64,000 bases of DNA, taken from the sequence record JN849462.1; one strand, given 5' to 3'. Positions 4,918 to 28,502 of the stretch are shown piece by piece. Each line of letters starts with the position of its first letter. Position 1 is the first letter of the stretch. Below the pieces are notes generated by a model. The model ran no database searches and was not told the DNA's origin. It worked only from the letters and a program-made list of their open reading frames with translations. Position numbers and translations under genes: made by a program.

Positions 4918-5211
4918 ATGAGAGAAGCAATTGCATTATTAAGCAACACGAGAATGGGATATACTGACATTAGCGCATTTGGCGATCCAGTATTATATGT
5001 TCATGCGGGACATGAGACGGTATTAAAAGTGCAATACACTGAAGATTGCTACTCATTTTACGACTACAGAAGCAAGTATCTTTATACAGAGCAGTCAATC
5101 GACGACTTAGAGATACATTTGAAATCAATAGATGTCGGGTTAGACGATGATCTACCGTTAAATGGGAACATCGACAAAGACACGATACCAGACGGGGAAT
5201 TTTTAGAATGA
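4918..5211 (+). CDS. hypothetical acidic protein
   Basis: 97 aa ORF, ATGA overlap with the next gene. Confidence 0.7.
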   Translation: MREAIALLSNTRMGYTDISAFGDPVLYVHAGHETVLKVQYTEDCYSFYDYRSKYLYTEQSIDDLEIHLKSIDVGLDDDLPLNGNIDKDTIPDGEFLE

Positions 5212-6127
5212 AGTTTAGTGAATATCAAAGAATAAACGAATCTCTAGATCGCCCTGCTAATTATAAACTGGTTAGAGAACTCCCAAATTTAAACGTGTAT
5301 GCGTTTCAAGTTGGTGGTGTTTATTATGAAATAGACATTCAGAAATCAAACATACGAGAGCCTAACGGGATGCAGTCAATGAAAGCTGAAGTCTCATTCA
5401 AAGCACTCGACGGCAGTGGTTATCAACTAACCAAAAAGACGATAAAACAGCACGAATTGTACTATCAACCGTAGTTGATGCTATCTTCAGCTTCGTACGC
5501 GAATACAATCCTGCTCAAATATTATATTCCGCATTCAACGATGCTGATCCTTCAGATGCTGCTAAACGACTTCGTTTATATCAGATCATGACTAAAGCAA
5601 AACTGCGTGAATTCCCCGAATATGATTTCCGAAACGTTGGGCGTGATTTCATCGTCTACGATGTCAATTACCAAAAACGAGTCGAGGAATTTTCAAGAAG
5701 AGCACGTAGACCAGTGGGATATGAAGAAAGATCAGACCACGTTGAAGTGAATTTATCACATGCCAACGCCTTTGCGTTTATACGAGCGTTTGGGGTAAAT
5801 GATGGCGACTCAAAGAGCGGCGTACTAGGTAAAGGTCGAGCTTTCGTAGGCGCAACAAACGAAATTAAAGCACGTCTAAGAGTAGATCGTGTGGTGTATG
5901 AAATGTCTGATAGAGAAGGATGGCTTGCGGCTCTTCAGCACCCTATTTTTGACTATGGCGAGGGTCCTGAAGTTGATCGAACATATCTAGTCGGGGCATT
6001 TAAAAACTTCTATATCGTGTTGACTAGTCAAACAAGTCTAAAAATATACACCGATGATGCTGCGTTTACAAAATATGTGAATGCTTTCGACGCGCCATGG
6101 TTAAACCCAGAAATAATGGAATCTTAA
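5208..6127 (+). pseudogene. frameshifted gene (ORFs 5208-5474 and 5588-6127 are one ~306 aa reading frame), paralog of 6130-6981
   Basis: The -1 frame from 5435 is open into ATG 5588 and encodes STVVDAIFSFVREYNPAQILYSAFNDADPSDAAKRLRLY, matching the neighbour's ATVIAEIKRLMKDNPVNKISFSAFQDSDSSDAKKRFRLY. Confidence 0.75.
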
Positions 6128-6129
6128 AA

Positions 6130-6981
6130 ATGAAATTTAGCGAATATCAAAACGAGCTAACAGAAGCATTTGATCGACCAGCACCGATCACAGCACGTCG
6201 CGGCAATCAGAGTTTTTTCATGATTGGTGACACTGAGTACATGGTCGGGTTGTATTACGACGACTCGAAAAAATCACTCGGAGTTGACTTCATGCATAAA
6301 CCGGGCGATTCAGCAACGTACTACTACAGCTTAGCCAAAGGCAACTCAAAAGACGCAATGACTGTTTTTGCCACAGTGATTGCAGAAATCAAGCGGCTTA
6401 TGAAAGACAACCCGGTAAATAAAATCAGCTTTAGCGCGTTTCAAGACTCTGATAGCTCAGATGCTAAAAAGCGTTTCCGTTTGTACAAGCGTATGGCAGA
6501 ACGTTTCAGCAAAGAGCTTGGGTTCAGAATGACCACGTATGGCGATTCTTTCACCATGACACGTATAAATCCTGTTGCAGTCAATGTAGAAGAGCCAACT
6601 GGTTATGATACAGCGTGGGGTACTGAAATGCTCGATCTGTATGAAGTCAACGACGCTGCAATTGCCAAAGTCACAGAAGGTGATGGTGAATGGCGTTTGA
6701 ATAACTGGAACAAGCTGATTGTTCGCAACGGTAAAGTAACACTAACATCGGGTCCAATTCGAATGTCAGACGCTTGGTACGATGCGTTTTACGACTTAGA
6801 ATGGTATCACGATGAAGAAGGCGAACAATGGTTCGATGATGAACAGAAGATCGCGATCATCAATGGTAAAGTTTGGGTCATCCACGACATGGAAATTACT
6901 ATTTGGCCAAGTATTGAGAAATTAGAATTGCAAAGTGACTCGGAATTATCAAGCGGGACACGTCAATTGCTTGGATATTAA
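6130..6981 (+). CDS. hypothetical protein, candidate capsid internal protein
   Basis: N-terminus MKFSEYQNELTE; paralog of the 5208 gene; start moved to ATG 6130. Confidence 0.75.
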   Translation: MKFSEYQNELTEAFDRPAPITARRGNQSFFMIGDTEYMVGLYYDDSKKSLGVDFMHKPGDSATYYYSLAKGNSKDAMTVFATVIAEIKRLMKDNPVNKISFSAFQDSDSSDAKKRFRLYKRMAERFSKELGFRMTTYGDSFTMTRINPVAVNVEEPTGYDTAWGTEMLDLYEVNDAAIAKVTEGDGEWRLNNWNKLIVRNGKVTLTSGPIRMSDAWYDAFYDLEWYHDEEGEQWFDDEQKIAIINGKVWVIHDMEITIWPSIEKLELQSDSELSSGTRQLLGY

Positions 6982-6985
6982 TCAG

Positions 6986-7010
6986 AAAGGTAGCTTCGGC
7001 TACCTTTTTT
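6986..7010 (+). terminator. intrinsic terminator, UUCG loop
   Basis: AAAGGTAGC-TTCG-GCTACCTTT-TTT. Confidence 0.9.
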
Positions 7011-7024
7011 CGTTTTCAGAGCAA

Positions 7025-7090
7025 AAAACGGTTGCATGAAATGCTCAAAACCCCTATTATAGCTTCATCGAAACGAAAGAGGAAAACGAA
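7025..7090 (+). promoter_or_regulatory. early promoter cassette
   Basis: A-tract, GTTGCATG, TATTAT, ATCGAAACGA, GAGG RBS. Confidence 0.8.
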
Positions 7091-7390
7091 ATGGATGTAA
7101 CATCAAAACTTGAATTGTCGATGAAAGAGTTCGTTGACGTTCCATACAACGAGCACAAAACTCATTCTCTTGTTGGTCAAGCAAGTGAGCACATTAACTC
7201 GTACTACAACAATCCGGGTGAAATCGTGACTTCAAACGTCATGTACGTTGAAATCAACGGTGGTATTGTGTATGCTGTAACGCACTCTAAGAGTCGCTAC
7301 CAGCTAACCAATGTGTCTCATGATGAGATTGCGCAAATGGTTAAAGCCGCAAGCGAACGCGGGATTAATATTCCGCTTTACAAAAACTAG
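7091..7390 (+). CDS. hypothetical protein
   Basis: First gene after the cassette. Confidence 0.8.
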   Translation: MDVTSKLELSMKEFVDVPYNEHKTHSLVGQASEHINSYYNNPGEIVTSNVMYVEINGGIVYAVTHSKSRYQLTNVSHDEIAQMVKAASERGINIPLYKN

Positions 7391-7451
7391 AAAAATTGCT
7401 TTAATACAAACTGATTCACTACTTTTGATTACTTTTTGAGAGAAATATATT

Positions 7452-7766
7452 ATGACTACTATCGTAAACTTCACTGCTGCAATCGAACTAACTACTAAAG
7501 CTCTTGTTGAAACTAACCGTATCGAGGGTCGTTTCTACAACTCACGCATCGGTCACGAGCAAGGTGAGCAAGCGAAAACTGACGCAGTTCGAGCGTTCAA
7601 AGTAATCGACAACAAAGTATATGCTGAAACTCGCAACTGCGTGTTCCATCTTCGCAATCTGTCTGCTCTTGCACTAGCTGACTTCAACACTATCAACGCA
7701 CCAGTGTACATGAAGAAAGCTGATGCTGAGTTCGACGAAATGGTTAAAGCAGCCCTGTTCTCGTAA
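7452..7766 (+). CDS. hypothetical protein
   Basis: RBS GAGAG, ATTATG start. Confidence 0.8.
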   Translation: MTTIVNFTAAIELTTKALVETNRIEGRFYNSRIGHEQGEQAKTDAVRAFKVIDNKVYAETRNCVFHLRNLSALALADFNTINAPVYMKKADAEFDEMVKAALFS

Positions 7767-8218
7767 TGTACCCGAAGAATAAAAGCTATTATGACTTGAT
7801 GTATCTTGACATCGCCAAGTCATTTGCTAAAAAAAGCACCTGCAAGCAGAAGCAAGTAGGTGCTGTCATCGTCAAGAATGATCGCATTATCTCACACGGT
7901 TACAATGGTACGCCGTCAGGTATGCTTCACTGTAAAGATACCGCTGACTTCGGTGATCTAACCCACCGTCAATGGTCAGAAATTCACGAGATTCATGCTG
8001 AACAAAACGCGATTTGCTACGCTGCACGTGCTGGCATATCTACTGAAGGCGCGACTATGTACGTCACAGCGTCGCCGTGTCATAACTGTGCCAAGCTGAT
8101 AGTCGCGGCTGGCATCAAAATTCTCATTGTAGGTTCGATTTACAGCGGTTCGCAACCCGATTGGTGGCACTGGCTACGTGATCGCGGTGTGAAAGTTATT
8201 ATGTTCGAAGACGAATAA
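7766..8218 (+). CDS. cd: dCMP deaminase
   Basis: STC..KQVGAVIVK, GYNG, HAEQNAI, SPCHNC zinc-deaminase motifs. Confidence 0.92.
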   Translation: MYPKNKSYYDLMYLDIAKSFAKKSTCKQKQVGAVIVKNDRIISHGYNGTPSGMLHCKDTADFGDLTHRQWSEIHEIHAEQNAICYAARAGISTEGATMYVTASPCHNCAKLIVAAGIKILIVGSIYSGSQPDWWHWLRDRGVKVIMFEDE

Positions 8219-8272
8219 TGTTTAATATAAGTAATTCGGACTTATAATAGAGCTTTAACAAGAGAGAAACAT

Positions 8273-9199
8273 ATGAAAAGTACAATGTTTTTGAACAACA
8301 TCACATGCATCGACCATGCATGGGTTGATGATATGGGTGAAATGAATGGTAATAGCTACAATCTATGTGTAGAAATTACCGGTGAAGTTGACGAAACTGA
8401 ACAAGTCGTTATTGATTTCAGTGGTTGTAAGAAAGCAATCAAACATCTTGTGGATGATTCGGAATTCGCCATTGATCATCGTCTAGTCGTCGTTGACGGG
8501 TTTAGTGATGCAGTTCTTTCTCAAGTCGAAGATCGACTACGCATTCAAATCGACACGCCGGTCTTCCATGCAGTGTCTACGGTTGACGACTGGTATCAAG
8601 TCATCAAGCCGAGCGAATTGATTGAAGCCGACTTTAAAATCCCTAGCGATTCTCTGTACATGTCGTATGTTACTGAGTATCTTGAAAATATGCTACTCGA
8701 ACAGCTACGTAAACAAGGCTATCCTGTTACACACGTCGCTGTAGAGCTTTCAGAGTCGTTTGACTTACCATCATGGGCAAACAGTCACGTTGAATTCAAT
8801 TACGCTCACGGACTGCGTTCAAGCACATCATACGGATGTCAGAACATTGCACACGGTCACCGTTCATTCATTGCAGTAGATAAGCACTTGAATAGTAACG
8901 GTCGCAAGGTACTGAAGCGCATTGCTAAAGAAATGAGCGGTTATATTGCTTGGTCAGAAAACATTCGCAAAGAAGATGAAGTGTCTTACACTTCAAAGCG
9001 CGGCAACTTCTACTTGAGACACAGCAATATCAAAGTAATCCCGACTGAAACTACAGTCGAAAATCTAGCCAATTACATTGCAACTACATACGAAGAAGAG
9101 TTTCAACGAATGGGCGTTCAGCGTGTGTGGGTATCTGAGGGTCTATCAAAAGGCTCAGTTGTAGACATCAAAATCAACAAAGAATTGCTCTATAAGTAA
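8273..9199 (+). CDS. queD: QueD-like 6-carboxytetrahydropterin synthase, two T-fold domains
   Basis: C-terminal domain FNYAHGL...CQNIAHGH...PTETTVENLA; degenerate N-terminal repeat IDHA...NGNSY...IDH; next to folE. Confidence 0.8.
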   Translation: MKSTMFLNNITCIDHAWVDDMGEMNGNSYNLCVEITGEVDETEQVVIDFSGCKKAIKHLVDDSEFAIDHRLVVVDGFSDAVLSQVEDRLRIQIDTPVFHAVSTVDDWYQVIKPSELIEADFKIPSDSLYMSYVTEYLENMLLEQLRKQGYPVTHVAVELSESFDLPSWANSHVEFNYAHGLRSSTSYGCQNIAHGHRSFIAVDKHLNSNGRKVLKRIAKEMSGYIAWSENIRKEDEVSYTSKRGNFYLRHSNIKVIPTETTVENLANYIATTYEEEFQRMGVQRVWVSEGLSKGSVVDIKINKELLYK

Positions 9200-9218
9200 T
9201 CAACAAATTAATGTTTAG

Positions 9219-9250
9219 TAGCACGTCTCGGCGTGCTATTATTGTTTTCT
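9219..9250 (+). terminator. hairpin with U-rich tail between queD and folE
   Basis: TAGCACGT-CTCG-GCGTGCTA then TTATTGTTTT. Confidence 0.5.
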
Positions 9251-9267
9251 ATCAATGAGGAAATAGA

Positions 9268-9942
9268 ATGTTAGACAAAAATAAAGTAGATCCAGTACTT
9301 GGACAAAAAGTTGAAGCGCATCTTCGCAAAATCGGGATGCACACGCCGACTGTTGAAAACGGTCTAACTGATGATGAAAAGAAAGCTATTCTTGAAGATC
9401 GTTTCACTGACATCATGCAAGCTCTTGGTCTTGACTTATCAGACGATTCATTAGTTGATACTCCGAAGCGTTGGGCTAAGATGATGGTTAACGAGCTTAT
9501 GAGCGGTCTGTCGCCAGATATGTTCCCGAAATGTACGGCTGTAGACAACAAAATGAACTACGATCAGATGGTTTGTGAAAAAGGTATTACTGTTCTTTCA
9601 CAATGTGAACATCACATCGTAACAATCGACGGCTTTGCCACAGTTGCATACATCCCGAAGAAAAAAGTTCTTGGTCTGTCAAAAATGAATCGCATCGTTG
9701 AGTACTTCGCTCGACGCCCGCAGATTCAAGAGCGTCTGACTGTTCAAATCGCTGAAGCACTGAAATTCATTCTTGAAACTGACGACGTAGCGGTGATGTT
9801 AGACTGCAAACACTATTGCGTCAAAGCACGCGGTGTTGAAGATAACAATTCAAGTACTGTTACAAGTCATCTTTCAGGTGCATTTAGAAATGAACCAGAA
9901 GCACGAGCGGAATTTATGTCTCTTGCTCGTTCACAGGCGTAA
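9268..9942 (+). CDS. folE: GTP cyclohydrolase I
   Basis: TPKR, SQCEHH, GLSKMNRIV, RRPQIQERLT, HYCVKARG, AEFMSL. Confidence 0.96.
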   Translation: MLDKNKVDPVLGQKVEAHLRKIGMHTPTVENGLTDDEKKAILEDRFTDIMQALGLDLSDDSLVDTPKRWAKMMVNELMSGLSPDMFPKCTAVDNKMNYDQMVCEKGITVLSQCEHHIVTIDGFATVAYIPKKKVLGLSKMNRIVEYFARRPQIQERLTVQIAEALKFILETDDVAVMLDCKHYCVKARGVEDNNSSTVTSHLSGAFRNEPEARAEFMSLARSQA

Positions 9943-10615
9943 CGTACCAATCTTTGAACTTAGCCGATGTGTATTTTACGCATCGGTTATACACAGTCAC
10001 ATTAGTGGTATCATTAGCTTCGGCTGCTAATCGAGACGACTCAAACACCCCGTTTGGTGTGTGGAATAGATACTTCGATTGTGGGTTTTGACTCCCGACT
10101 TTAGACTTAGCGAGCTTTCGCTTATGTTCTTCAGTTTTTGTCGTGCCCTTCAGAACACCTTTACTCTTCGCAACATATTCACCGCGAAGGTATCGTTCGT
10201 CGTCAACTCGAATGTATTCAGTTTCACCAGTAGCAATGCATATCGCAGCAAACTTACCTATATGATGCTTTGCAGCATCTTTTCTGGCATCTTTTGTCAT
10301 CGACTCAAACAACCTAGAGTTCATCTTGAACTCGCGTTGCTGTGAGTTGTTCGACATATTAAATGCTGTTAGTGCAAACTTCAGCCGATGTTTCAAGTTA
10401 CCATTGAACATCTTAGCCAATAGCAAATGAGCTATATAATGCTCACGTGCTGTCAATCGCACTAGGTTATTTGATTCATCACTACCACCCGCACATTTAG
10501 GTAAAATGTGATGTTTTTCGCTATAACCGTCTGGTGTGTTTTGAATTCGATTCTCGATTAGAGAAATGTACCATTTTGTGTATTTGTTTAGTATAAGATT
10601 GTCGTGTGTTAACAT
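9914..10615 (-). mobile_element. free-standing HNH homing endonuclease (MobE-like HNH with NUMOD3/IENR1-type C-terminus)
   Basis: EKHHILPKCAGGSDESNNLVRLTAREHYIAHLLL; KTEEHKRKLAKSK; GVFESSRLAAEA; antisense inside the cluster. Confidence 0.88.
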
Positions 10616-10648
10616 TGTACTCTCTTTAAATAAGCATTACTGTGTTAA

Positions 10649-10656
10649 TATTTATA
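10649..10656 (-). promoter_or_regulatory. T4-type late promoter for the HNH gene
   Basis: Perfect TATAAATA on the - strand, then an AGAGAG RBS before ATG 10615. Confidence 0.75.
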
Positions 10657-10676
10657 ATTTTAAGACGAGGTTCACA

Positions 10677-12053
10677 TTGATCATTGAATACGTTATGTCT
10701 GCGACGGGTCATGCCCGTCTCGGTGCAGCACATAAGCTAATGGACGTAGTTGACACGTCCTATTTGCGCGATATTCTAAATGCAGCGCAAGATCTCGACG
10801 GTGTTCACAAAATCAGTATGCTGTACAACGCATATACTGAAAAGAAAGTCGGTCATCAAATCAATGACTTGTTTGGCGATTCTGTCTACAAGGTACACGT
10901 CGATTCGGGTGGTCTACAGATAGTCAACTTGGGTTTAGAGAATACGCCAGAACTTCGTAAAGCAGTTTACGAGAATCAAGCAGAATCTGGCGATATTGGC
11001 ATGTGTTTTGACGAAATCCCGTTGCACAACGAAGCAAAGGGTGGTGGCGCTGCTCGTATCAACACGAAAGACAAGGTCTTCATGTATGATCTAGCGTACA
11101 AGTACGGCGTCAAAACAGGTAAGAACATTCGCGCACAAATCGAAACTTATATCGAGAAGGGTAGCAAATGCAAACCGTATATCATCTTACAAGGCAACTC
11201 AGACGACGACTTTAAAGCATTCAGTGACGGGATTATGTCTCAACTCGAAGGCGTTGAAGATCACATTGCTGGTTGTGCTGCTGCCGATACATGCATTGGT
11301 AATGGCGTACGTGAGTCTATCGACATGATGAGCGTCATTCCGAAACTCAACATCCCAGAGAAAGCAAAGAAATCAGTGCATATGCTGGGAGTTGGCTCAG
11401 TTAAACGTCTATTGCCTGCTGTAGCACTTATCAGAAGTGGTTATTTTGGTGATGACTTTCATATCAGCTATGACTCATCAACGCATACTGGATGTCTGAC
11501 TAACCGAGAATACACAGACAAGCTTGGTCGCCGTCGTAAAATCTCAGGTCACGGAATTATGAAAGATGGTAAGAAATTGCCTTCTCGTGAGCTTGATGAA
11601 ATGCTAGATGAAGTGTGGGGTCGATTCGGTCATACTCTACCGCGTAGCAAAGAAGAGTTCAAGGAATTCGCGACACGTCTGTGGTTGAAAGAACTCGACA
11701 AAGAAACAATGACTGACGAAGATATTGTGTTTGAAGTTGCTTGCAACTTGTGTATAATCTTATCACAAGTCAACAACTTTCAAGCGATTATCTCTGAAAC
11801 GTTTGACTTGAATACGCCAAAAGCTGCTGATTTGTCAGCGTTCTTCGGTGGTTCTATTGAGAAAAAAGAGCCGCAAGAGGGATTCAAGAAGTGGTCAGCG
11901 ATTCGTCGTCTTGATGTTCTTGATAAACTACTTGACGTTAAAACTATCGAAGCATATGATCGCTGGCACAGTAGCTATGTTGATAGACTACCGTCAATGC
12001 GCATTCGTCGCGGCACAACTGCTGAATTCCCAGCTTTCAAAGAACAAGAATAG
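10677..12053 (+). CDS. dpdA: TGT-fold 7-deazaguanine DNA transglycosylase (DpdA-like)
   Basis: VDSGGLQ, CFDEIP, ILQGN, HMLGVG, SYDSS correspond to TGT/DpdA motifs; lies in the queD-folE-queF-queC cluster; probable TTG start at 10677 after GAGGT. Confidence 0.8.
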   Translation: MIIEYVMSATGHARLGAAHKLMDVVDTSYLRDILNAAQDLDGVHKISMLYNAYTEKKVGHQINDLFGDSVYKVHVDSGGLQIVNLGLENTPELRKAVYENQAESGDIGMCFDEIPLHNEAKGGGAARINTKDKVFMYDLAYKYGVKTGKNIRAQIETYIEKGSKCKPYIILQGNSDDDFKAFSDGIMSQLEGVEDHIAGCAAADTCIGNGVRESIDMMSVIPKLNIPEKAKKSVHMLGVGSVKRLLPAVALIRSGYFGDDFHISYDSSTHTGCLTNREYTDKLGRRRKISGHGIMKDGKKLPSRELDEMLDEVWGRFGHTLPRSKEEFKEFATRLWLKELDKETMTDEDIVFEVACNLCIILSQVNNFQAIISETFDLNTPKAADLSAFFGGSIEKKEPQEGFKKWSAIRRLDVLDKLLDVKTIEAYDRWHSSYVDRLPSMRIRRGTTAEFPAFKEQE

Positions 12054-12071
12054 CGCCTTCGGGCGCTCTTT
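12052..12071 (+). terminator. UUCG hairpin, probable terminator
   Basis: AGCGCC-TTCG-GGCGCT-CTTT. Confidence 0.65.
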
Positions 12072-12082
12072 ATGAGGTAAAC

Positions 12083-12991
12083 ATGAGCAATTATGATCAA
12101 GTTTCAGCTATTGCTGCTGAACATTTAGGTAAAAAAGCTGGCGATTACAGCGATTTCGTTGACATCGTAGAAGTTCGCCCTGATTTACTCGTGCCAATCC
12201 CGCGTGAACTGAATCGAACTGACTACGGTATCACAAATGAAGACTTTGCAGGGTTTGATACGTGGCATGGCTTCGAAGTTTCTGCACTGACTGAACAAGG
12301 TCTGCCTGTATCAGGCATGGCTAAAGTAGTGTATCCGAGTGATTCACCGAACATCGTTGAAAGTAAATCAATGAAACTGTACTGGAACAGCTTCAACATG
12401 GCTAAAGTCGCTGCGACTCGTGCTGAAGTGAAAGATGCAATTGAAGCAATCGCGTCGCGTGATCTATCTGAAGTCATCGGTGCGCCTGTTCAAGTAAGTT
12501 TCTTCACTGAAAAACTAACTCAACCGCATGGTATGACTGGCTTTGCTGAACTCGACAAATATGTTTCTGAATCGACTGTGTTTGACTCTGAGAGTGGTGC
12601 TGACGCTGATCTATTGCAAGAGTCGCACATCAAGAAACTGAAAGTGTTCACGCCTAATCTGCGTTCAAACTGTCGCGTTACACATCAACCCGACTTCGGT
12701 GATTTGTACGTATACATGAGCGGCGAAAAGACTCCGACTGTTGATAGTCTGATGCAATACATCGTTTCTTTCCGCAAAGAGAATCATTTCCATGAAGAAT
12801 GCGTTGAAATGATTTACAAAGCGTTGCTTGACAAGTTCGACCCGACTGAACTGATGGTCACAGCGTTATACACACGTCGCGGTGGATGGAATATCTGTCC
12901 AGCACGAGCGACACACGAAGAGCTATTGCCAGAAGCACTTGGTAGTAAATCTGTCTCGCACACTAACGGAAGTTGTTTATTCCGTCAGTAA
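12083..12991 (+). CDS. queF: NADPH-dependent preQ0 reductase, two-domain type
   Basis: VESKSMKLYWNSF QueF motif, CRVTHQPDFG, ENHFHEECVE, YTRRGG. Confidence 0.93.
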   Translation: MSNYDQVSAIAAEHLGKKAGDYSDFVDIVEVRPDLLVPIPRELNRTDYGITNEDFAGFDTWHGFEVSALTEQGLPVSGMAKVVYPSDSPNIVESKSMKLYWNSFNMAKVAATRAEVKDAIEAIASRDLSEVIGAPVQVSFFTEKLTQPHGMTGFAELDKYVSESTVFDSESGADADLLQESHIKKLKVFTPNLRSNCRVTHQPDFGDLYVYMSGEKTPTVDSLMQYIVSFRKENHFHEECVEMIYKALLDKFDPTELMVTALYTRRGGWNICPARATHEELLPEALGSKSVSHTNGSCLFRQ

Positions 12992-13046
12992 TAAGAGCTA
13001 TGATGAGTGTTCAATTGTGAGCACTCATATACTTGAGAGGTTAAAA

Positions 13047-13763
13047 ATGAAAGTAGTATCTGTTCTAAGCGGTGGCTTGGACTCAACAATCCTTACGTAC
13101 AAACTAGTTGACGAATTCGGCAAAGACAATGTGTTTGCATTATCGTTCTACTACGGTCAAAAACAGTCGATTGAGCTAGAAAAAGCTAAATTGACTTGTC
13201 AAAAGCTCGGCATCGAGCATCGTCTAATTGACATTTCATTCTTAGGTGAAGTCGTCGCGCCAGTCTGTGCGAATATCGCTGGTTCAGATGTTGCTATGCC
13301 AACTATTCAAGATGTTCTCGGTGACCCTCAGCCACCAACTGAAGTTCCATATCGTAACATGCTATTGAACACAATCGCGTTCTCATTCGCACAAGCAAAT
13401 GGTTGTTCAGCGGTGTTTACGGGTATTCAAGTGCATGACGCATATGGTTATTGGGACTGCACGCAAGATTTTCTTGACGGTATGAACAAAATTTCAGCAC
13501 TGAATCGTCAACACGAAATCACATTACATGCGCCGTTCGCTCAAATGTCAAAAGCTGATGAAATCGCTATCGGTGTTGAGCTTGGTGTGCCGTTCGAGGA
13601 TAGTCTGACTTGTTACGACCCGAACGAAGCTGGCGAAAGCTGTGGTAAATGTCCGTCGTGTGCTGAACGCATCATGAACTTCGGCAAAGCTGGTATAGTC
13701 GATCCTGCGCCTTACTCAATTGACATCTCGTGGAAGCAAGTATTTGCTAAGGCAGGTCATTAA
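13047..13763 (+). CDS. queC: 7-cyano-7-deazaguanine synthase
   Basis: SGGLDST, YGQKQ..E, VPYRN, YWDC, TCY...CGKCPSC; start moved to ATG 13047 after GAGAGG. Confidence 0.95.
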   Translation: MKVVSVLSGGLDSTILTYKLVDEFGKDNVFALSFYYGQKQSIELEKAKLTCQKLGIEHRLIDISFLGEVVAPVCANIAGSDVAMPTIQDVLGDPQPPTEVPYRNMLLNTIAFSFAQANGCSAVFTGIQVHDAYGYWDCTQDFLDGMNKISALNRQHEITLHAPFAQMSKADEIAIGVELGVPFEDSLTCYDPNEAGESCGKCPSCAERIMNFGKAGIVDPAPYSIDISWKQVFAKAGH

Positions 13764-14371: not shown

Positions 14372-14379
14372 GGTAAAAC

Positions 14380-14655: not shown

Positions 14656-14848
14656 CGACCCGTTTGCTGAACAATTGCGCGTCGGACAGTGGATTCTTCA
14701 CAAGAAGACGGGTAATGTGTATATAGTAACGAGTAAAGGCAAACTCAAGTTCGACGGTAAATGGTATAATTCTGTCACTTACACGAGCGAACTAGGCGAC
14801 GTATATACAAGAACATACGACGACTTCCGCGGGTTTGAACTAGCATAA
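14648..14848 (+). CDS. DUF1653-like small protein
   Basis: HKKTGNVYIV...VTY...VYTR..DDF. Confidence 0.55.
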   Translation: MYNDPFAEQLRVGQWILHKKTGNVYIVTSKGKLKFDGKWYNSVTYTSELGDVYTRTYDDFRGFELA

Positions 14849-15498: not shown

Positions 15499-15499
15499 G

Positions 15500-18706: not shown

Positions 18707-18731
18707 ACAGTCCTTGAAACAAATTATGTGA

Positions 18732-19268
18732 GTGAAGACTATGAGCTTGAGTGAACGTGAAGAAGAGCTAAAAGCATTAGCGATTGACCATGTGTGTGAC
18801 GATGAAGTTGCTGTCACCGTTTCATGCGCTGGTATGAGTAATTACTACACTGTTTGCCCGTCAGAGTTCAAAGACTTTTTGGACAACCATGAGGGAACAT
18901 CTTATGTAGCATTTGAATGGCACAACATCCCAGATGATTTACAAGATGAAGAACTAGACTTCGATGGTCTACTTGCTTGGTTCAATCTAGATGAACATGA
19001 GCGTGAAATCTGCGAAGCATTGTATGATAATAACGTTTGTATGTCATACGAAGATGCAGCCGAGAAAGTTGCTGACTGTTGGGTTTTTGAAGGCACGAGC
19101 GAAGACTATGCAAGACATGTAACGTCTGAATTAATGGGCATTCGCTTAGAAGATATGCCTGTCATTGTAAGCAGCAACATCAACTGGGGTGATGTATTCA
19201 TCGACCTTGACGCAGAAGGTAGTATCTACGAAATTGGTCGCGACAAATACTTAACAGTACACGGTTAA
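18732..19268 (+). CDS. ardA: ArdA-like antirestriction DNA-mimic protein
   Basis: Very acidic; EREICEAL...EDAAEKV...FEGTSEDYA...NINWGDVFIDLDAEG resembles the ArdA C-terminal pattern. Confidence 0.65.
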   Translation: MKTMSLSEREEELKALAIDHVCDDEVAVTVSCAGMSNYYTVCPSEFKDFLDNHEGTSYVAFEWHNIPDDLQDEELDFDGLLAWFNLDEHEREICEALYDNNVCMSYEDAAEKVADCWVFEGTSEDYARHVTSELMGIRLEDMPVIVSSNINWGDVFIDLDAEGSIYEIGRDKYLTVHG

Positions 19269-19270
19269 AA

Positions 19271-19849: not shown

Positions 19850-20055
19850 TTACTTCAGTTGAAACTTATGAAGGTCTACTAGACACATTCGAAAAACCAC
19901 AACCAATGAAAATTGTGACTGGTGAGATTCACTATTCATTATTTGGCATTCCGTTGCTTCGTCGCAAATGCGAACTATTGCTAGAGACTTACTTGGTTTC
20001 AACTGACTCTATGCTCGGTGATGTTTACATGTGGGACGTGGCAAAACGTTTATGA
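19846..20055 (+). CDS. hypothetical protein
   Basis: ATGA overlaps on both sides. Confidence 0.7.
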   Translation: MITSVETYEGLLDTFEKPQPMKIVTGEIHYSLFGIPLLRRKCELLLETYLVSTDSMLGDVYMWDVAKRL

Positions 20056-20429
20056 GAAAATTATTAAGGGGACTTATGTCCAATTTCAAAGCAAATCTAA
20101 AAAGTCGCAGTACAATTAAGATCAATGGTACTGAGTATCACGGTACAAGTGTGACGATCAAAAACGGCAAAGTCGTCGTTGACGGTCGTTTGCAAGGTGA
20201 CATTGATGATCGCGTGGTGAACGTGTATATTGATGGTGACTGTACGCTTGTTCAGAACGAGAACGGCAATATTGCATGTCGTAACGTACAAGGTGACGTG
20301 TCAACGACTAATGGCGATATTGAATGTGACGATGTTAACGGTTCAGTATCATCAACGAACGGCGACATTAAATGCTGTGATGTTGGCGGTAACGTAAGCA
20401 CAACCAACGGGGATATTATCCGAAAATGA
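20052..20429 (+). CDS. DUF4097-like beta-repeat protein
   Basis: Four ~17-aa repeats ending in NG[ND]I. Confidence 0.7.
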   Translation: MRKLLRGLMSNFKANLKSRSTIKINGTEYHGTSVTIKNGKVVVDGRLQGDIDDRVVNVYIDGDCTLVQNENGNIACRNVQGDVSTTNGDIECDDVNGSVSSTNGDIKCCDVGGNVSTTNGDIIRK

Positions 20430-20698
20430 AAGATCAAACTCGAATCAAAGAAGTAATTGACGGCGCGATTGAGAAAATTGAATCACAATCGACACAAAGT
20501 TTCAGCGTGCAAGAATTTACGCCATGTGATGTTGTCAATTACTTGCAGGAAATCGGCTACGAAGCCCATGATCTTGAGACAAACGGTTGGCAAGTTGACT
20601 TCTGGCAAGATTTCAGCAAAGACGGATGCAAGACACTTACCTTTTCAGGTAGCTGGTACTTTGGTCAAGCAACCTTGAGTGAGGCATACAATGACTAA
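20426..20698 (+). CDS. hypothetical protein
   Basis: ATGA overlap. Confidence 0.75.
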   Translation: MKDQTRIKEVIDGAIEKIESQSTQSFSVQEFTPCDVVNYLQEIGYEAHDLETNGWQVDFWQDFSKDGCKTLTFSGSWYFGQATLSEAYND

Positions 20699-20993
20699 GC
20701 AAACAGATTTCTTTGATCGTGAAATCAAAGATGGTGACTTTGTTCTGCGTGCTAAGAACTCAGGTCGTACATACACCATGAGCGTGCTTCATGTTGTTGA
20801 CTTGCCGGACGGTAAGCGCAAGTATCTTGAACTGAGTCGTTGGGGTGGTAGCGGTATCAGTCGAAATGCCAAATTGCCTTGCGGTAGTTCATCTACTATC
20901 GTTGAAGCGTCACTTGTTGAAAGCAAATACCCTGATGCGTATCGCGCTGCATTACAAGAAGCTGATCTTCTGCGCATGCCAATCCCGCAATAA
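20691..20993 (+). CDS. hypothetical protein
   Basis: RBS GAGG; start at 20691. Confidence 0.75.
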   Translation: MTKQTDFFDREIKDGDFVLRAKNSGRTYTMSVLHVVDLPDGKRKYLELSRWGGSGISRNAKLPCGSSSTIVEASLVESKYPDAYRAALQEADLLRMPIPQ

Positions 20994-21048
20994 TGCTTGA
21001 CACGTGTTGTCAGTCGTGTATAATTCTCTGTAAACATAGGAGAGCAAT

Positions 21049-21186
21049 ATGATTGACAACATGATAAAAGACATGATCGAGTCAGAAATTGATGTTAATG
21101 ACATCGTTGATTGTCTAGTTAACCAGTACGACGTATCTCACGATGAAGCACTTGAAGCGATTCACGAGGTACTTAACGAAATGTGA
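21049..21186 (+). CDS. small acidic protein (below the ORF-track cutoff)
   Basis: 45 aa MIDNMIKDMIESE...; follows a TTGACA/TATAAT promoter and AGGAG RBS. Confidence 0.65.
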   Translation: MIDNMIKDMIESEIDVNDIVDCLVNQYDVSHDEALEAIHEVLNEM

Positions 21187-21193
21187 GAAATAT

Positions 21194-23263: not shown

Positions 23264-24293
23264 TTTGCCACTCGAAACAAAACAGTCAATCGTTAAAGCA
23301 TCTGCAAACGGCATGACACAGAAAGACAACGCGGCGAAGCATGGGACTTCGCCAACCACCCTGCGCCGTGTGCTTGCTGAACACCGTGAAGGCAAATTCA
23401 GCTTAAACACTGCCAAGCAAGTAGTTAAGCGCCCAGCTAAAGTGAAATCACTTTCGACCGACTTCAAAGCGAATCTAGACGAGTTGCTAGACGCTACTGG
23501 CACTAAAGAAGAGCCAAAGACGAAAGCGCCTGAGTCTGAAAAGACTCTTGACCAGAAGCTAGACGAAGCGATTGAAGACTTCGCTTACGTGATTACGCCA
23601 GTTAACGTGTCATTCACGTTCAAAGGTCAGGCATTTTCTGCTGACATCACAGCTCCGAACTACAGCAAAATCGTTGCTGCATTGCTAGACAACGACGGCG
23701 AGCTTGCAGTTTCATTGCTTGATGTTGCGAAAGGCATCGAAGAATTCATGCTTGGCAATGTAGTTGTTAAGGGTGGCGTGGTTAAGTACAAAGATCTTGA
23801 CATCGACGGTGGTATGACTGGTCGTATTCTTGAAGCAATGGAAGCTGGTGACAAGTCTCAAGTGACTAAGCTTGTTAAGTTCTTCGAAAATCTCATTGAG
23901 AACCCATCACGTCGCGCTGTTGAAGAGCTTTACGGCTTCTTGGAAGCTGCTGACATCGAACTTACCGATGACGGTCACTTCCTAGCGTACAAAAAGATTC
24001 GCGACAACTACAAAGACATTCACAGTAACACTATGTGCAACAAGCCAGGCACTCGTGTGTGGATGCTACGTCACCAAGTGAACGACGACAAAGATCAAAC
24101 GTGTTCTGCTGGTCTTCATGTATGTTCGAAAGGCTACTTGCCACACTTTGGCAGTTCAGCGGGTACTCGCATCGTGCTTTGTAAAGTGAACCCACGTGAT
24201 GTTGTGTCTGTACCTACTGACTACAACAATACAAAATTAAGATGTAGCGAGTATCTAGTCTTGAAAGAACTAGACAAAAATACTTTGAAATAA
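23256..24293 (+). CDS. rIIB: rIIB protein
   Basis: ENPS, ELYGFL, DGHFLAYK, CSAGLHVC, VNPRDVVSVPTDYN..KLRC. Confidence 0.94.
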   Translation: MVNLPLETKQSIVKASANGMTQKDNAAKHGTSPTTLRRVLAEHREGKFSLNTAKQVVKRPAKVKSLSTDFKANLDELLDATGTKEEPKTKAPESEKTLDQKLDEAIEDFAYVITPVNVSFTFKGQAFSADITAPNYSKIVAALLDNDGELAVSLLDVAKGIEEFMLGNVVVKGGVVKYKDLDIDGGMTGRILEAMEAGDKSQVTKLVKFFENLIENPSRRAVEELYGFLEAADIELTDDGHFLAYKKIRDNYKDIHSNTMCNKPGTRVWMLRHQVNDDKDQTCSAGLHVCSKGYLPHFGSSAGTRIVLCKVNPRDVVSVPTDYNNTKLRCSEYLVLKELDKNTLK

Positions 24294-24300
24294 TGTAAAA

Positions 24301-24373
24301 AAAGGGTTGACTTCGGTCAGCCCTTTCTTGTATTATTCTCATATCGAAACGAAACACCGAAAGAGAGAATAAT
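24301..24373 (+). promoter_or_regulatory. promoter/terminator cassette
   Basis: AAAGGGTTGAC-TTCG-GTCAGCCCTTT, TATTAT, ATCGAAACGA, GAGAG RBS. Confidence 0.85.
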
Positions 24374-24688
24374 ATGAAATCTGACCTACGCACTATCCAA
24401 ACTCTAGTAGAACAAAAAGATGTAGCAATCGTTGTTAAAGAACAGTATCGAAATGCACTTGCATTCGCATACGGCTGCATGACTGGCGTTCAGCGTCAAG
24501 TATACCGAGACTACCACATGAGCGTGCTGGTTGAGAGATTTGACCTTGAATTCTGTGAAGCAAACGAAGTTATCTTACCTTACGGTGAGTTGAAGTCTGC
24601 AATCAAATTCATCAAAGATAGCTTGAGCGCGTCTGACTATGACGAACTGAAAGCACTATTTCAATTCAACATTAAACTGCCAGAGTAA
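24374..24688 (+). CDS. hypothetical protein
   Basis: First gene after the cassette. Confidence 0.8.
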   Translation: MKSDLRTIQTLVEQKDVAIVVKEQYRNALAFAYGCMTGVQRQVYRDYHMSVLVERFDLEFCEANEVILPYGELKSAIKFIKDSLSASDYDELKALFQFNIKLPE

Positions 24689-24693
24689 GAAGC

Positions 24694-25380
24694 ATGAAAC
24701 GATTTAAGAAACACATTAAAAAGTATGACGAGCATGGCGTAGTTCAGTATAATATGCTGATGATATTCGCTTTGATAGTCACAATATCAATGTCAATCGC
24801 ACTTGTTGCGTCAAATATTTTGTTTGCATTTGAGCTTTCAGCTAGTAACGCTAACATCAAAACACCTGGTGATGCATTCTGGACGGTTTGGATGGCTATG
24901 AGCACAATTGGATTTGGTGATCATTATCCCGTAACGACTGGTGGTAGATTTGTTATTGGTTCTATGTTTGTCGTTGGTGCGTCGCTGATTGGTCTTAACA
25001 TCGGTATCGCGAATGCGTGGATTACATCTAAGTTCGACAAAAGCATACAGAATCGCGTGTTGAAGAGTCAAAACGATGCTCTATTGCAGAAATTAGATCG
25101 TCTTGAGACACATCTAGGCATCGATCAAGAGGTGTTGTTTTCGAAAGATGCTCATGGTATAGATACAATGATTGACCAGTATTTTGACAGCAACGACAAA
25201 GCAGAGAGATTTGTTACACTCGGTCAAGATGATAGCGGTCGATATGTCGTGGCAATAAATCAGCAAATCATCGAAACACAAAAGACATCATTGAAATGGC
25301 ACACGTTCATTAAAGAAGATGATGCGACGAAATTCTACAAAGACACAAGTGAACTATTCCACACGGAGCTATTCATATGA
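24694..25380 (+). CDS. 2-TM potassium channel (KcsA-like) with C-terminal extension
   Basis: TM1, pore helix AFWTVWMAMS, filter TIGFGD, TM2 GRFVIG... Confidence 0.9.
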   Translation: MKRFKKHIKKYDEHGVVQYNMLMIFALIVTISMSIALVASNILFAFELSASNANIKTPGDAFWTVWMAMSTIGFGDHYPVTTGGRFVIGSMFVVGASLIGLNIGIANAWITSKFDKSIQNRVLKSQNDALLQKLDRLETHLGIDQEVLFSKDAHGIDTMIDQYFDSNDKAERFVTLGQDDSGRYVVAINQQIIETQKTSLKWHTFIKEDDATKFYKDTSELFHTELFI

Positions 25381-25874
25381 TTCGTAATATCTTATTTGCT
25401 GCTCTTGCAGCTATGACACTCGCAGCATGTGATAACAATTCTGCGACATTAGACACAAATGCTTACTATGCTGAACAAGAACAGCTATTAGTTGAAGCAC
25501 CGACGACTGAAATGTTTGATACACAGCCACCAGTTGTTCAACCTGTACAACAACCTGTACAACAACCGGTGATTATTCAGCAAGACGACGGGTTTGATCT
25601 AGGTGACGCAGCGATTGGTTTTGTTGCTGCTGAATTGATAGATGAAGTTGGTGATGCTTTCGAATCGAAGCATAAGAAGACTTACGTCGCGCCAGTGAAA
25701 CAGCCTGTAATTAAGAAAGTTACACCGTATCAAGCGCCTAAAAAGCCTGTAGTAGTTAAGCCAACTGTAGTCAAACCGAGCATAGTTGAGACGAAACCTG
25801 AGAAAAAAGAGGGTTTTTTCAAGAAAGCAGTCAAAAAGGTTAAAAAAGTTAAGCGTAGTAAACGCGGAAAATAA
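25377..25874 (+). CDS. lipoprotein with QPV repeats and Lys-rich tail
   Basis: Lipobox LAAC; QPVQQPVQQPV. Confidence 0.8.
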   Translation: MIRNILFAALAAMTLAACDNNSATLDTNAYYAEQEQLLVEAPTTEMFDTQPPVVQPVQQPVQQPVIIQQDDGFDLGDAAIGFVAAELIDEVGDAFESKHKKTYVAPVKQPVIKKVTPYQAPKKPVVVKPTVVKPSIVETKPEKKEGFFKKAVKKVKKVKRSKRGK

Positions 25875-25900
25875 AAAAGGGAGCGATTGCTCCCTTTTTT
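25873..25900. terminator. bidirectional terminator
   Basis: AAAAAAGGGAGC-GATT-GCTCCCTTTTTT. Confidence 0.85.
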
Positions 25901-25901
25901 G

Positions 25902-26453
25902 CTATTTGTTTTTCGATAAAACATCGAGAATTCTAGCTAATTCAGATTCGATGTGCTCAAGCTCCATTAGATATTCATCTGATTGCTTGATGTCACTACG
26001 TAGAAGACCTTTTGAAGTCGCAATATCAACGTCGCTATCTAGACTACCACGCAATTTACGTACCAAGAACAACGCACGATTCAAATCACGAGTGAATACG
26101 TTCACTGTCTTGTCGGTGATCTTGTCTTCTGGCATACTCTGATATTTGTTCAGTTTTCTCATGGTTTTCTTCAATTCTTTGAAGTCTTTACGCGCTTGAC
26201 CGCCAGCGAATAACACGCCACCAATCAAACCATTAAGTCCCATTGAGATACCAGCCCATGCCGCTAATGGCAATGCGATAGAAAGCCCTGCTGTACCCGG
26301 TGCTGCTGCAATTGAAGCACTTGCCATACCTACAAAGCCACCCACTGCTGCGCCGATTGCAGCACTATTCTTAGCCCATTGACCGATAGTTGCTTCTTTC
26401 AACTCATCTGAATTCTTGAATTCATCAAATGTCTTTAGTTCCATTCTGTTCAC
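25902..26453 (-). CDS. late gene, candidate internal head protein with Gly/Ala-rich hydrophobic core
   Basis: ELKTFDEFKNSDELKE N-terminus; upstream TATAAACA (26556-26563) and TAAATA (26569-26574) on the - strand. Confidence 0.7.
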   Translation of the reverse strand: MNRMELKTFDEFKNSDELKEATIGQWAKNSAAIGAAVGGFVGMASASIAAAPGTAGLSIALPLAAWAGISMGLNGLIGGVLFAGGQARKDFKELKKTMRKLNKYQSMPEDKITDKTVNVFTRDLNRALFLVRKLRGSLDSDVDIATSKGLLRSDIKQSDEYLMELEHIESELARILDVLSKNK

Positions 26454-26628
26454 CTTGATTCATGCTCATAAAAAACGAGGGAGCGACTATAAGTGGAACC
26501 AATACTCGCAGTGACCAATGCGATACATAGTCACTACCCTCGAAACTGAGAAAAATGTTTATATGTTATATTTAGTGTTAGCTAGACACTCGTATAGCAA
26601 TTATCTCTAAGAAAAGTAGAAAAAAATG

Positions 26629-26657
26629 TTGACTAAAGTGTAAAATATCCTTATCAT
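26629..26657 (+). promoter_or_regulatory. early promoter
   Basis: TTGACT-17 nt-TATCAT. Confidence 0.7.
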
Positions 26658-26705
26658 AGTGTATATTCTAATGAAACGTACAAAAATACAACAAAAGAGG
26701 TTAAC

Positions 26706-27173
26706 ATGACTCCAAAATCAATCATTCGTGCAGCAAATACTCGCGTGTCCGAGCTTCAAATCTTCAGTGGCGAGAACAGTACAGTCGTAGTTGGTGCACC
26801 AGGTAGTGGTAAAAACGCTATGCTGATGGGAATGCTCATGCAACGTGGTGTTGCTGACTGTACAATGATCGTTACAGAAATGCGTGCTGGTGACATGGCA
26901 GAGAAGCTAGGCACAGGTGCTCTTGTGGTCAATGGCGGTCTTGACCTCGAATCTCTTGTTGGTGCAGTTGCATTTGCGTGTACACAACCACGTTCTGACA
27001 TCTTTATCGAACAAGTGTCACCGATTCTCGGTCACAATATTGTTGAGATTCTAGAGTCAATCGCTAAGCCATTCAACAAGCGTATCTACGTCGGTATGCA
27101 AGCTGTACGCAGTCATAGCGGTCTAGGTGATAACTATCAAACACAAATGATGAATACATTGAAACTGGGGTGA
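26706..27173 (+). CDS. small P-loop NTPase-like protein
   Basis: GAPGSGKN Walker A; DIFIEQ possible Walker B. Confidence 0.65.
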   Translation: MTPKSIIRAANTRVSELQIFSGENSTVVVGAPGSGKNAMLMGMLMQRGVADCTMIVTEMRAGDMAEKLGTGALVVNGGLDLESLVGAVAFACTQPRSDIFIEQVSPILGHNIVEILESIAKPFNKRIYVGMQAVRSHSGLGDNYQTQMMNTLKLG

Positions 27174-28216
27174 TTATGAACGTACTATTCACGAGTCTAT
27201 TCGGCTCGAAACTATATGGCACAGACACGCCAGAGTCAGACACTGACTATAAAGCAGTCTATCTACCTGAGTTGCGAACTCTACTTCGTGGTGTTGCAAT
27301 AAAAAACTCAGTGCATTCCACTGGCAAATCGTTCGAGAAGAACGGCGCAGACGATGAAGACTTCGAATACATCCCTGTTCAAGTGTTCATGCGTGACTTT
27401 CTCGGGGGTCAGTCATATGCAATCGAGTTAGCATTCAATGCACTACAGAACCCTGATGACTGTAAGCCAGAGTTCTACAACATGTGTAAAGAAATGACTC
27501 GCAAGTACTTGACATCAAACGTCAAAGCAATGACTGGCTATGCGCTTAACCAAGCACAGAAGTACGGCATCAAAGGTACTCGACTGAACAGCCTTATGCA
27601 ATTTGCACGTGCTGTAGAGACGCACAACGTCGATCCTAAAGCGAAGTTAGGTTCAAGCCCTGAGTTGTGTAAGCAACTATGGGAACTGTGTGCAGAAGAC
27701 GCTCACGTGCGTTTTCAGTGGTATCATGGGCCCAAGACTAAAGACGCAAGCGACTTGAAAGACCCTGCGTTCAGTGTGCTTGAGAAAGTATTCGGTCTTG
27801 AGATCACGTTTGAAGAAGCTGCCGGTCGTCTTGAGAAGATGATGAGCAAATACGGCGCTCGTGCATACCAAGCGCGTGCTGCAAGCGGCTCAGACTGGAA
27901 AGCAATCTCTCATGCTATGCGCGTGATCGATCAAGCAATCGACATACTGACAGTTGGTAAGCTTGAGTTTCCGTTGAAGCACGCTGCGTTCTATCGTGAC
28001 GTGAAACAAGGTAAATACAAGTGGGAATACGTGTCTGAAGTGCTGCAAGAGCGCCTTGAATTGCTCGAAAAAGCAAAAGATACAACGTCACTTCCACATC
28101 ACACGCCTGATTTGGTTGCGAGATTTTACATCTGGTACGATGATTACCTTGATGAGTTTTATTTCCCTTGTGAAATGACTGATGAAGAAGTCAAACAAAT
28201 GCTAGGCGCGTACTAG
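27170..28216 (+). CDS. DNA pol beta-superfamily nucleotidyltransferase (RlaP / T4 NrdC.11-like)
   Basis: FGSKLYGTDTPESDTDYKAVY; DWKAISHAMR. Confidence 0.85.
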   Translation: MIMNVLFTSLFGSKLYGTDTPESDTDYKAVYLPELRTLLRGVAIKNSVHSTGKSFEKNGADDEDFEYIPVQVFMRDFLGGQSYAIELAFNALQNPDDCKPEFYNMCKEMTRKYLTSNVKAMTGYALNQAQKYGIKGTRLNSLMQFARAVETHNVDPKAKLGSSPELCKQLWELCAEDAHVRFQWYHGPKTKDASDLKDPAFSVLEKVFGLEITFEEAAGRLEKMMSKYGARAYQARAASGSDWKAISHAMRVIDQAIDILTVGKLEFPLKHAAFYRDVKQGKYKWEYVSEVLQERLELLEKAKDTTSLPHHTPDLVARFYIWYDDYLDEFYFPCEMTDEEVKQMLGAY

Positions 28217-28217
28217 T

Positions 28218-28225
28218 TATAAATA
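28218..28225 (+). promoter_or_regulatory. T4-type late promoter
   Basis: Perfect TATAAATA, 25 nt before the ATG. Confidence 0.8.
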
Positions 28226-28250
28226 CGTTAAACAAACAAAGAGGTTTAAC

Positions 28251-28502
28251 ATGCAAGGTTTTAACGATTATTTCAAGAAAGGTGAAGTCAAGCTGCAAGA
28301 AACTGAACAAGAGTTTCACGAGCGCGTTGTCAAGCATCGTAAAGTAGATGACAAACGTTATCCAGACTTATCTAAGGCTGGGCTAGAGGGTCCATATACT
28401 GATCTTAATGGTAAAGTGTATTACTATGACCCACGTGAAGGCATGTACTACGATCCAGACACTGACATTTACATCACTGCAAAAGATTTACGTTTACCGT
28501 AA
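28251..28502 (+). CDS. small late protein with OCRE-like Tyr repeats
   Basis: GLEGP...YYYDPREGMYYDPDTDIY. Confidence 0.75.
   Translation: MQGFNDYFKKGEVKLQETEQEFHERVVKHRKVDDKRYPDLSKAGLEGPYTDLNGKVYYYDPREGMYYDPDTDIYITAKDLRLP

Follow-up and report, generated by a model that had tools for sequence, protein, structure and literature searches.

Candidate capsid-targeting leaders in Vibrio phage phi-pp2 and a domain family that may share its front end with T4 Alt

Proteins injected from the head act ahead of all phage gene expression, IPI of phage T4 being a classic anti-restriction factor, and we know of no recognised internal proteins in the KVP40-like phages. Does a short N-terminal pattern that recurs on hypothetical proteins of one such phage mark them for the capsid? 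The stretch of DNA examined here (the window, 64,000 nucleotides) corresponds at 100% identity to bases 62001-126000 of record JN849462.1, Vibrio phage phi-pp2, a KVP40-like Schizotequatrovirus. A first-pass annotation had picked out four open reading frames (ORFs 1-4), annotated as pp2_111, pp2_113, pp2_146 and pp2_149 and all labelled 'hypothetical protein', and had proposed that they share a T4-type capsid-targeting leader. The four N-terminal strings on which it drew are all present at the starts it gave, and the start of ORF 3 at 26444 is likely correct because AGGTG precedes that ATG, whereas an upstream GTG has no such site. Judged from sequence, the best reading of these leaders is that they direct proteins to the capsid and are trimmed by the prohead protease, a reading to which we assign a probability of about one half. 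It is strongest for pp2_149, which is small and has a late promoter and a terminator of its own, and a module resembling part of the T4 protein Alt makes it plausible for pp2_113 as well as for its broken paralog.

T4-like leaders, late promoters and head genes

The leaders of the T4 internal proteins (IPI, IPII, IPIII; NC_000866) are 19, 10 and 10 residues long and combine a K-T-[YF]-x-E-F core with I-x-E followed by A, features of the T4 capsid-targeting leader that have been described (PMC9026906). From these leaders and the four phi-pp2 N-termini we built the regular expression ^M.{0,5}[FY].[DE][FY].{0,12}[IL].E and applied it to the first 28 residues of ORFs called by a crude greedy procedure; any in-frame Met among the first 40 codons could serve as the start, matches were compared by eye with the public annotation, and the phi-pp2 record was scanned piecewise. 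The expression finds seven N-termini in phi-pp2, where 0.6 would be expected from residue shuffles and 1.4 from internal windows, and none of 300 shuffles reaches seven. Six of the seven coincide with annotated starts (pp2_094, pp2_111, pp2_113, pp2_146, pp2_149 and, weakly, pp2_374) and the remaining one lies at an internal Met; with a looser scan pp2_309 joins them, bringing the annotated starts to seven. When paralogs are merged about five independent families are left, still well above expectation, and the leader stands in front of at least four unrelated mature sequences: a group with a DUF6934-like domain, pp2_146, pp2_149 and pp2_309. In T4, where 0.44-0.49 matches are expected, the expression retrieves IPI, IPII, IPIII and gp61.1 and nothing else. 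The gp61.1 protein (54 residues; 18966-19130 of the T4 sequence scanned), the only match that is not an established internal protein, has an internal-protein-like leader.

The self-contained case in the window is pp2_149 (28251..28502, + strand; 83 residues). Its 17-residue leader (28251..28301, +) ends in L-Q-E and is followed by a 66-residue acidic, Tyr-rich part. In an alignment of 10 relatives (A3), F4 is invariant and L15, Q16 and E17 are kept in at least 90%; the leader is retained in nine of the 10, and the most distant of them (P0021) has the T4-like T-F-R-E-F-L-T-E. A T4-type late promoter box, TATAAATA, lies at 28218..28225 (+), 33 nucleotides before the ATG, and is the only exact plus-strand copy in the window; just past the gene there is a terminator-like hairpin (28515..28534, no strand assigned). 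With its promoter, gene and terminator-like hairpin, pp2_149 thus forms a self-contained late cassette. A match to the OCRE domain covers only a 21-residue Tyr-rich stretch and was given no weight. Outside the window, in the tRNA region, pp2_309 (record 174463-174642; 59 residues, predicted mature isoelectric point (pI) 9.8) starts with M-K-L-K-T-F-D-E-Y and also has an exact TATAAATA 33 nucleotides upstream. By its sequence, no other phi-pp2 gene looks so classically like one for an internal protein.

The exact box occurs 15 times in the 246-kb record, each time 26-67 nucleotides before an ATG. It precedes the genes for gp22, gp23, gp24 and gp18 (sheath), wac, a baseplate gene, a T-holin-like gene, uvsW and three homing endonuclease genes, as well as pp2_149, pp2_309 and pp2_056, a further gene with a DUF6934-like domain. 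Three of about eight leader-bearing genes therefore lie behind one of 15 exact promoters among about 395 genes, where about 0.3 would be expected by chance. The first-pass annotation had placed a late promoter directly upstream of both ORF 3 and ORF 4; this holds for ORF 4, whereas the only box near ORF 3 is a copy with one mismatch, 119 nucleotides upstream. We regard the lack of a late box at ORFs 1 and 2 as neutral, since the T4 ip genes also have no exact box within 150 nucleotides. As for the head machinery that such leaders would need, phi-pp2 encodes gp20, gp67, gp68, gp21, gp22, gp23, gp24, Inh and Alt, so that the gp21 protease and gp22 scaffold of the T4 internal-protein system are both present. 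In gp21, gp22, gp23, gp68 and Alt of phi-pp2 an [IL]-x-E lies near the N-terminus in the same places as in T4; gp67 has none.

A DUF6934-like family and its resemblance to Alt

The four ORFs had been described as unrelated-looking, which does not hold for the first two: ORFs 1 and 2 are tandem paralogs that both belong to PHROG 6387 and align along their length (alignment A1). ORF 1 is the first part of a broken gene made up of pp2_111 and pp2_112 (5208..6127, +), the ortholog of the intact KVP40.0115 (306 residues), with one frameshift and no other break. Compared as two separate pieces, pp2_111 and pp2_112 match positions 2-78 and 126-301 of PHROG 6387, and a global alignment of the phi-pp2 and KVP40 DNA (920 versus 921 bases) contains a single one-base gap and 17 mismatches. 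Because the KVP40 frame is intact and only one base is missing, this is one gene broken by one frameshift, either in phi-pp2 or in its record; the frameshift may reflect either a true mutation or an error in sequencing. The gene has an N-terminal DUF6934-like domain and a C-terminal domain of its own, and its leader-like N-terminus (5208..5240, +) consists of 11 residues that end in I-N-E and are followed by S-L-D-R-P.

The intact paralog, pp2_113 (6130..6981, +; 283 residues), combines a DUF6934-like N-terminal domain (about residues 6-145) with a beta-rich C-terminal domain. Its leader-like N-terminus (6130..6165, +) is 12 residues long and ends in L-T-E followed by A-F-D-R-P, which would leave a mature part of 271 residues. 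Within the pp2_113 family M-K-F-S-E-Y-Q is invariant, as are L10 and E12 (alignment A4). The AlphaFold model has a mean predicted local distance difference test score (pLDDT) of 83.6, falling to 54 for residues 1-10; it shows a low-confidence helix at residues 3-14, then four strands, then a helix, a strand, a helix and two strands. Against PDB folds the model gives weak matches, mostly to GNAT acetyltransferases; those to the catalytic domain of RNase E are weak as well (E at least 0.013) and were set aside. The Pfam family DUF6934 (PF22028) scores 20.4 bits on pp2_113 and 21.8 bits on KVP40.0115, both below its gathering score of 27, and relatives found with the pp2_113 profile match it at 40-162 bits, often in multiple copies.

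A search with the profile of the pp2_113 family against 1.84 billion representative sequences retrieved 824 proteins at E<=1e-3, and the widespread part proved to be only residues 6-150 or so. This domain occurs alone (140-160 residues), at either end of a protein or in the middle of one (up to 1566 residues), and some proteins have 2-17 copies of it. The relatives are encoded on contigs of large phages; one metagenomic member sits amid gp53- and gp5-like baseplate genes. In 49 Vibrio phages the pp2_113 family has 2-4 members in each genome, and phi-ST2 (1209-3464 of the sequence compared) has three tandem copies, one of them a 149-residue form that consists of the domain only. This variation in copy number resembles that of arms-race genes.

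With a broader domain hidden Markov model (HMM), five phi-pp2 members were recovered: pp2_056, pp2_094, the broken gene, pp2_113 and pp2_370. Three of them lie outside the window. Beside alt and on the opposite strand, pp2_056 (record 31684-32565) starts with M-I-I-F-E-D-I-N-P-L-C-E/A-F-D-R-P (here and below a slash marks a cut or the position proposed for one) and has an exact TATAAATA 31 nucleotides upstream. In pp2_094 (record 58867-60321, 1.7 kb before the window; 484 residues, pI 4.2) the leader is very like those of T4 (M-K-L-F-T-E-F ... L-D-E), the DUF6934-like domain has diverged (HMM E 4.6e-7), and at the C-terminus there are HEAT-like repeats with the motif D-E-D-V-R. In pp2_370 (record 233009-233971, near head genes) the DUF6934-like domain is C-terminal and contains an internal L-T-E-S-L-D-K-P. 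Because pp2_094, ORF 1 and ORF 2 all carry the domain, the leader that they share reflects common descent.

Across its instances the domain starts with [LIV]-[TN]-E-[AL]-F-D-x-P, and the E is present in 77 of 77, including all 34 internal copies. In ORFs 1 and 2, then, [IL]-x-E belongs to the signature of the domain and not to a free-standing leader, which taken alone speaks against a dedicated one. The proposed family defined by shared N-termini is in part an artefact of paralogy. Copies of the domain at the N-terminus, however, very often begin with M-K-T-[FY]-x-[EQ]-[FY]-[IL]-x-E, as in P0123 and P0169; in internal copies these first residues are missing.

The same signature is found at the start of Alt. 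The record of T4 alt (X15811.1) notes '6 amino acids cleaved off', and with six residues removed the cut falls inside I-T-E/L-F-D. Of the eight Alt N-termini that we read, seven have the pattern [LI]-x-E-[LVS]-[FL]-[DE]; the phi-pp2 Alt has L-T-E and then N-M-S, without F-D. A Foldseek search of BFVD with the pp2_113 model returned six Alt-type proteins (E 3.5e-5 to 3.4e-3, probability 0.99-1.00), the match probably lying in the N-terminal region of Alt; it is the DUF6934-like, GNAT-like-fold domain of pp2_113 (6130..6564, +) that would be similar in fold to this front part. Further BFVD matches are phage proteins with zeta-toxin, ParB/Srx and deaminase domains and one 'structural protein', and all of the named matches are phage proteins; these phages presumably have T4-type head genes. 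An HMM search of T4 six-frame ORFs found no DUF6934-like member, so the link to Alt rests on fold and signature. T4 Alt itself matches the ADP-ribosyltransferase family PF03496 (E 5.8e-36); a Pfam search of the window proteins found no such domain.

pp2_146 and competing explanations

The leader that most resembles those of T4 belongs to pp2_146 (25902..26444, - strand; 180 residues). It is 17 residues long (26394..26444, -), contains K-T-F-D-E-F and ends in L-K-E before A-T-I; behind it come a Gly/Ala-rich hydrophobic stretch at about residues 27-82 and a helical, basic C-terminal part. The gene is single copy and conserved in 45 Vibrio phages, and a terminator-like hairpin (25872..25901, no strand assigned) lies between it and the convergent pp2_145. 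With a predicted mature pI of 9.5, pp2_146 is the sole basic protein among pp2_113, pp2_146 and pp2_149; its predicted model is poor (pLDDT 54.6). At 57-61% identity, L3-K4-T5-F6, E8, L15, E17 and A18-T19-I20 are invariant (alignment A2). The nt-1 ortholog (48% identical) retains K-T-F-D-E-Y and L-N-E/A-T-I, and the D479 ortholog (30% identical) has a nine-residue form, M-K-T-F-E-E-F-N-E/A-T-V, in which F-N-E replaces [IL]-x-E. Both thus keep K-T-F-[DE]-E-[FY] and x-E/A-T-[IV]; with two blocks kept and the spacer free, the leader fits a two-part signal. Despite this leader, the best T4-like one, packaging is least certain for pp2_146 because of its hydrophobic body.

Several observations weigh against capsid targeting, and other explanations of the same N-termini compete with it. 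For ORFs 1 and 2, the leader helix and [LIV]-x-E-A-F-D could be integral to a cytoplasmic enzyme or binding module of the GNAT-like DUF6934 type, with paralogy accounting for the shared pattern, convergence of amphipathic helices for the likeness to T4, and no packaging. The [LIV]-x-E, being invariant in the internal copies as well, may have a purely structural or catalytic role, and the domain can stand mid-protein or at the C-terminus, as in pp2_370, in proteins of up to 1566 residues or with 2-17 repeats. The pp2_113 profile matches relatives from about residue 6 on, so that the leader helix counts as part of the domain, and family conservation in ORFs 1 and 2 continues straight over the proposed cut into A-F-D-x-P. 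Both genes lie in a same-strand, early-looking gene run without a late promoter. The predicted mature forms of pp2_113, pp2_149 and pp2_094 are acidic (pI 4.9, 5.2 and 4.2), in contrast to the T4 internal proteins (9.0-9.7). T4 has no domain member detectable by HMM, and the profile link between pp2_113 and Alt is weak: hhalign gives E 0.0022 with the phi-pp2 Alt (104 columns), 0.028 with T4 Alt (10 columns) and 0.0015 with an alignment of Alt proteins (41 columns), and HMM comparison of Alt with the pp2_113 family gives E 0.003-0.3, with the phi-pp2 Alt collinear from residue 1. Against a purely structural motif, however, T4 Alt is on record as being processed at the same signature, and what is added in N-terminal but not in internal copies, M-K-T-[FY]-x-[EQ]-[FY], is nearly the IPII/IPIII leader. 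The paralog pp2_056 adjoins alt and has an exact late promoter, every named BFVD match comes from a phage, and a homolog in phage PA5oct (EST35_0349) is annotated 'structural protein; ESI-MS/MS' and was reported from particles, although the PA5oct virion list (93 proteins) also holds enzymes unrelated to the virion. On balance, we consider this explanation of ORFs 1 and 2 somewhat unlikely.

A slightly stronger competitor, although one we still do not favour, is that pp2_146 is a late inner-membrane protein of a holin, antiholin or exclusion type, whose N-terminus is a short cytoplasmic tail. Its 55-residue hydrophobic stretch fits a membrane protein, with Kyte-Doolittle means of 1.2-1.7 (borderline to positive), and the basic helical C-terminal part and the conservation as a single-copy gene on the strand opposite to its neighbours, closed by a terminator, also sit well with this idea. 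The lack of an exact late promoter counts against capsid targeting of pp2_146. Weak Pfam matches to Phage_holin_3_6 (20.6 bits) and to DUF6861 point the same way, but fall under the cut-offs (28.4 and 28). Furthermore, within the first 25 residues conservation is highest in the leader, including x-E/A-T-[IV], and the leader shrinks to a T4-like nine-residue form in the distant D479 ortholog. The specific possibility that pp2_146 is holin T was rejected, since the genome already has a T-holin-like gene, pp2_295, behind a late promoter beside asiA and the tail fibre genes. For the leaders at large one may invoke chance: the motif is loose, [IL]-x-E is frequent, short acidic and aromatic N-termini followed by it could be common and picked by eye, the match in pp2_374 is unconvincing, and the regular expression was shaped after the sequences had been seen. 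Because of this last point, its near-specificity for internal proteins in T4 is a better control than the counts in phi-pp2. That it picks out the known T4 internal proteins, that seven matches face an expectation of 0.6-1.4 and no shuffle reaches this number, that about five families survive the merging of paralogs, and that leaders are conserved in orthologs and linked to late promoters together make chance very improbable. Finally, in the literature searched we found no virion proteome or N-terminal mapping of any KVP40-like phage that would place these proteins in particles.

Other features of the window are noted for completeness. A homing endonuclease gene (9914-10615, -), absent at the same place in KVP40, is preceded by the window's only exact minus-strand TATAAATA (10649-10656). 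A cluster of the 7-deazaguanine/queuosine type (8273-13763) contains two QueF-like genes, FolE and QueC, with QueE located elsewhere, and hints at modified DNA or tRNA chemistry. Downstream of pp2_149, pp2_150 (28560-28934) encodes a SLOG domain protein related to YspA/cpYpsA (PF10686, E 1.4e-22), and pp2_144 (24694-25380), annotated as a potassium channel protein, adjoins rIIA/rIIB. Pfam matches of window proteins to Lsr2, WW, LapA and FtsK are short or of low complexity and were given no weight.

A possible route into the head and its relation to known systems

If the leaders do target the capsid, their first 11-17 residues would act like the sequence that targets T4 internal proteins to the capsid. 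The aromatic and acidic core, K-[TF]-F-x-[DE]-[FY], would dock the protein on the scaffolding core while the prohead forms, a gp21-type prohead protease would then cut after [IL]-x-E, and the trimmed protein would remain in the head and leave it with the DNA. Two kinds of protein might use this route. The first, represented by pp2_149 and, outside the window, pp2_309, would be small proteins behind exact late promoters, which is the classic internal-protein layout. The second would be the DUF6934-like family (pp2_113 and pp2_111/112, with pp2_056, pp2_094 and pp2_370 outside the window), in which the domain may be a head-delivery module, resembling the front end of Alt, with varied C-terminal payloads. 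What the analysis shows directly are the sequences, the enrichment and conservation of the motif, the late promoter, the distribution of the domain and the likeness in fold. Targeting, cleavage, packaging and injection are inferred for these proteins, as is any role against host defences; such a role, including one against modification-dependent nucleases, is speculation to which nothing in the sequences speaks.

A bolder proposal would join these observations: the DUF6934-like domain would be a general head-delivery module of phages with T4-type heads and the same as the front of Alt, [LIV]-x-E/[AL]-F-D would be a prohead-protease site, the leader of the T4 internal proteins would be a relic of the first helix, and the proteins with 2-17 copies would be polyproteins that are diced in the head into single injected units with different payloads. 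Taken as a whole we think this rather doubtful. What the analysis provides is a ranked set of internal-protein candidates (pp2_149, pp2_309, pp2_056, pp2_113 and pp2_146, in that order) and a large uncharacterised domain family, with 824 relatives, whose start signature and fold are also those of the front of Alt. Should the signature be a processing site, head-packaged effectors could be predicted by a sequence rule in many large phages.

How closely do these proteins resemble systems that are already known? In the T4 internal proteins, a leader of about 10-19 residues, with a core K-T-[YF]-x-E-F and, ahead of a small residue, [IL]-x-E, is common to otherwise unrelated proteins, and the phi-pp2 leaders are alike in both respects, although they are longer (11-17 residues) and contain a spacer. 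The idea of a T4-type capsid-targeting leader held up in each test made on the sequences, namely likeness to T4, enrichment at N-termini, conservation, the head machinery and the late promoters; the mature parts are unlike internal proteins. T4 internal proteins are small and basic, whereas among the phi-pp2 mature parts one is hydrophobic and one has 271 residues, and comparison of the window proteins and their alignments with Pfam, PHROGs, NCBIfam and PDB sequences linked none of the mature parts with IPI, IPII or IPIII. The start of the N-terminal DUF6934-like copies is nonetheless nearly the same as the IPII/IPIII leader.

The layout of pp2_113 is closer to that of T4 Alt, a head-packaged and injected ADP-ribosyltransferase. 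Both have a conserved front module followed by a payload, and the start of T4 Alt, [LI]-x-E-[LV]-F-[DE], is the domain-start signature of pp2_113 and its relatives; they differ in that the ADP-ribosyltransferase domain of Alt is missing from pp2_113 and its broken paralog. Pfam lists DUF6934 as uncharacterised and without a function, and a connection with Alt and with prohead processing is our proposal and not Pfam's. More broadly, virion-embedded, injected effectors with several domains are an established concept (Iyer, Burroughs and Aravind, PMC9503650), although as far as the texts we examined go, a DUF6934-like or Alt-front module has not been described as their carrier. In the polyvalent head-packaged effectors, MuF-linked and others (PMC9503650), a conserved module is joined to varied enzymatic domains, and the situation here is alike: the fold relatives of pp2_113 carry zeta-toxin, ParB/Srx, deaminase, GNAT and ADP-ribosyltransferase domains. 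The module in the present proteins is DUF6934-like, in place of the MuF domain, which was not found here, and membership of this class is an analogy.

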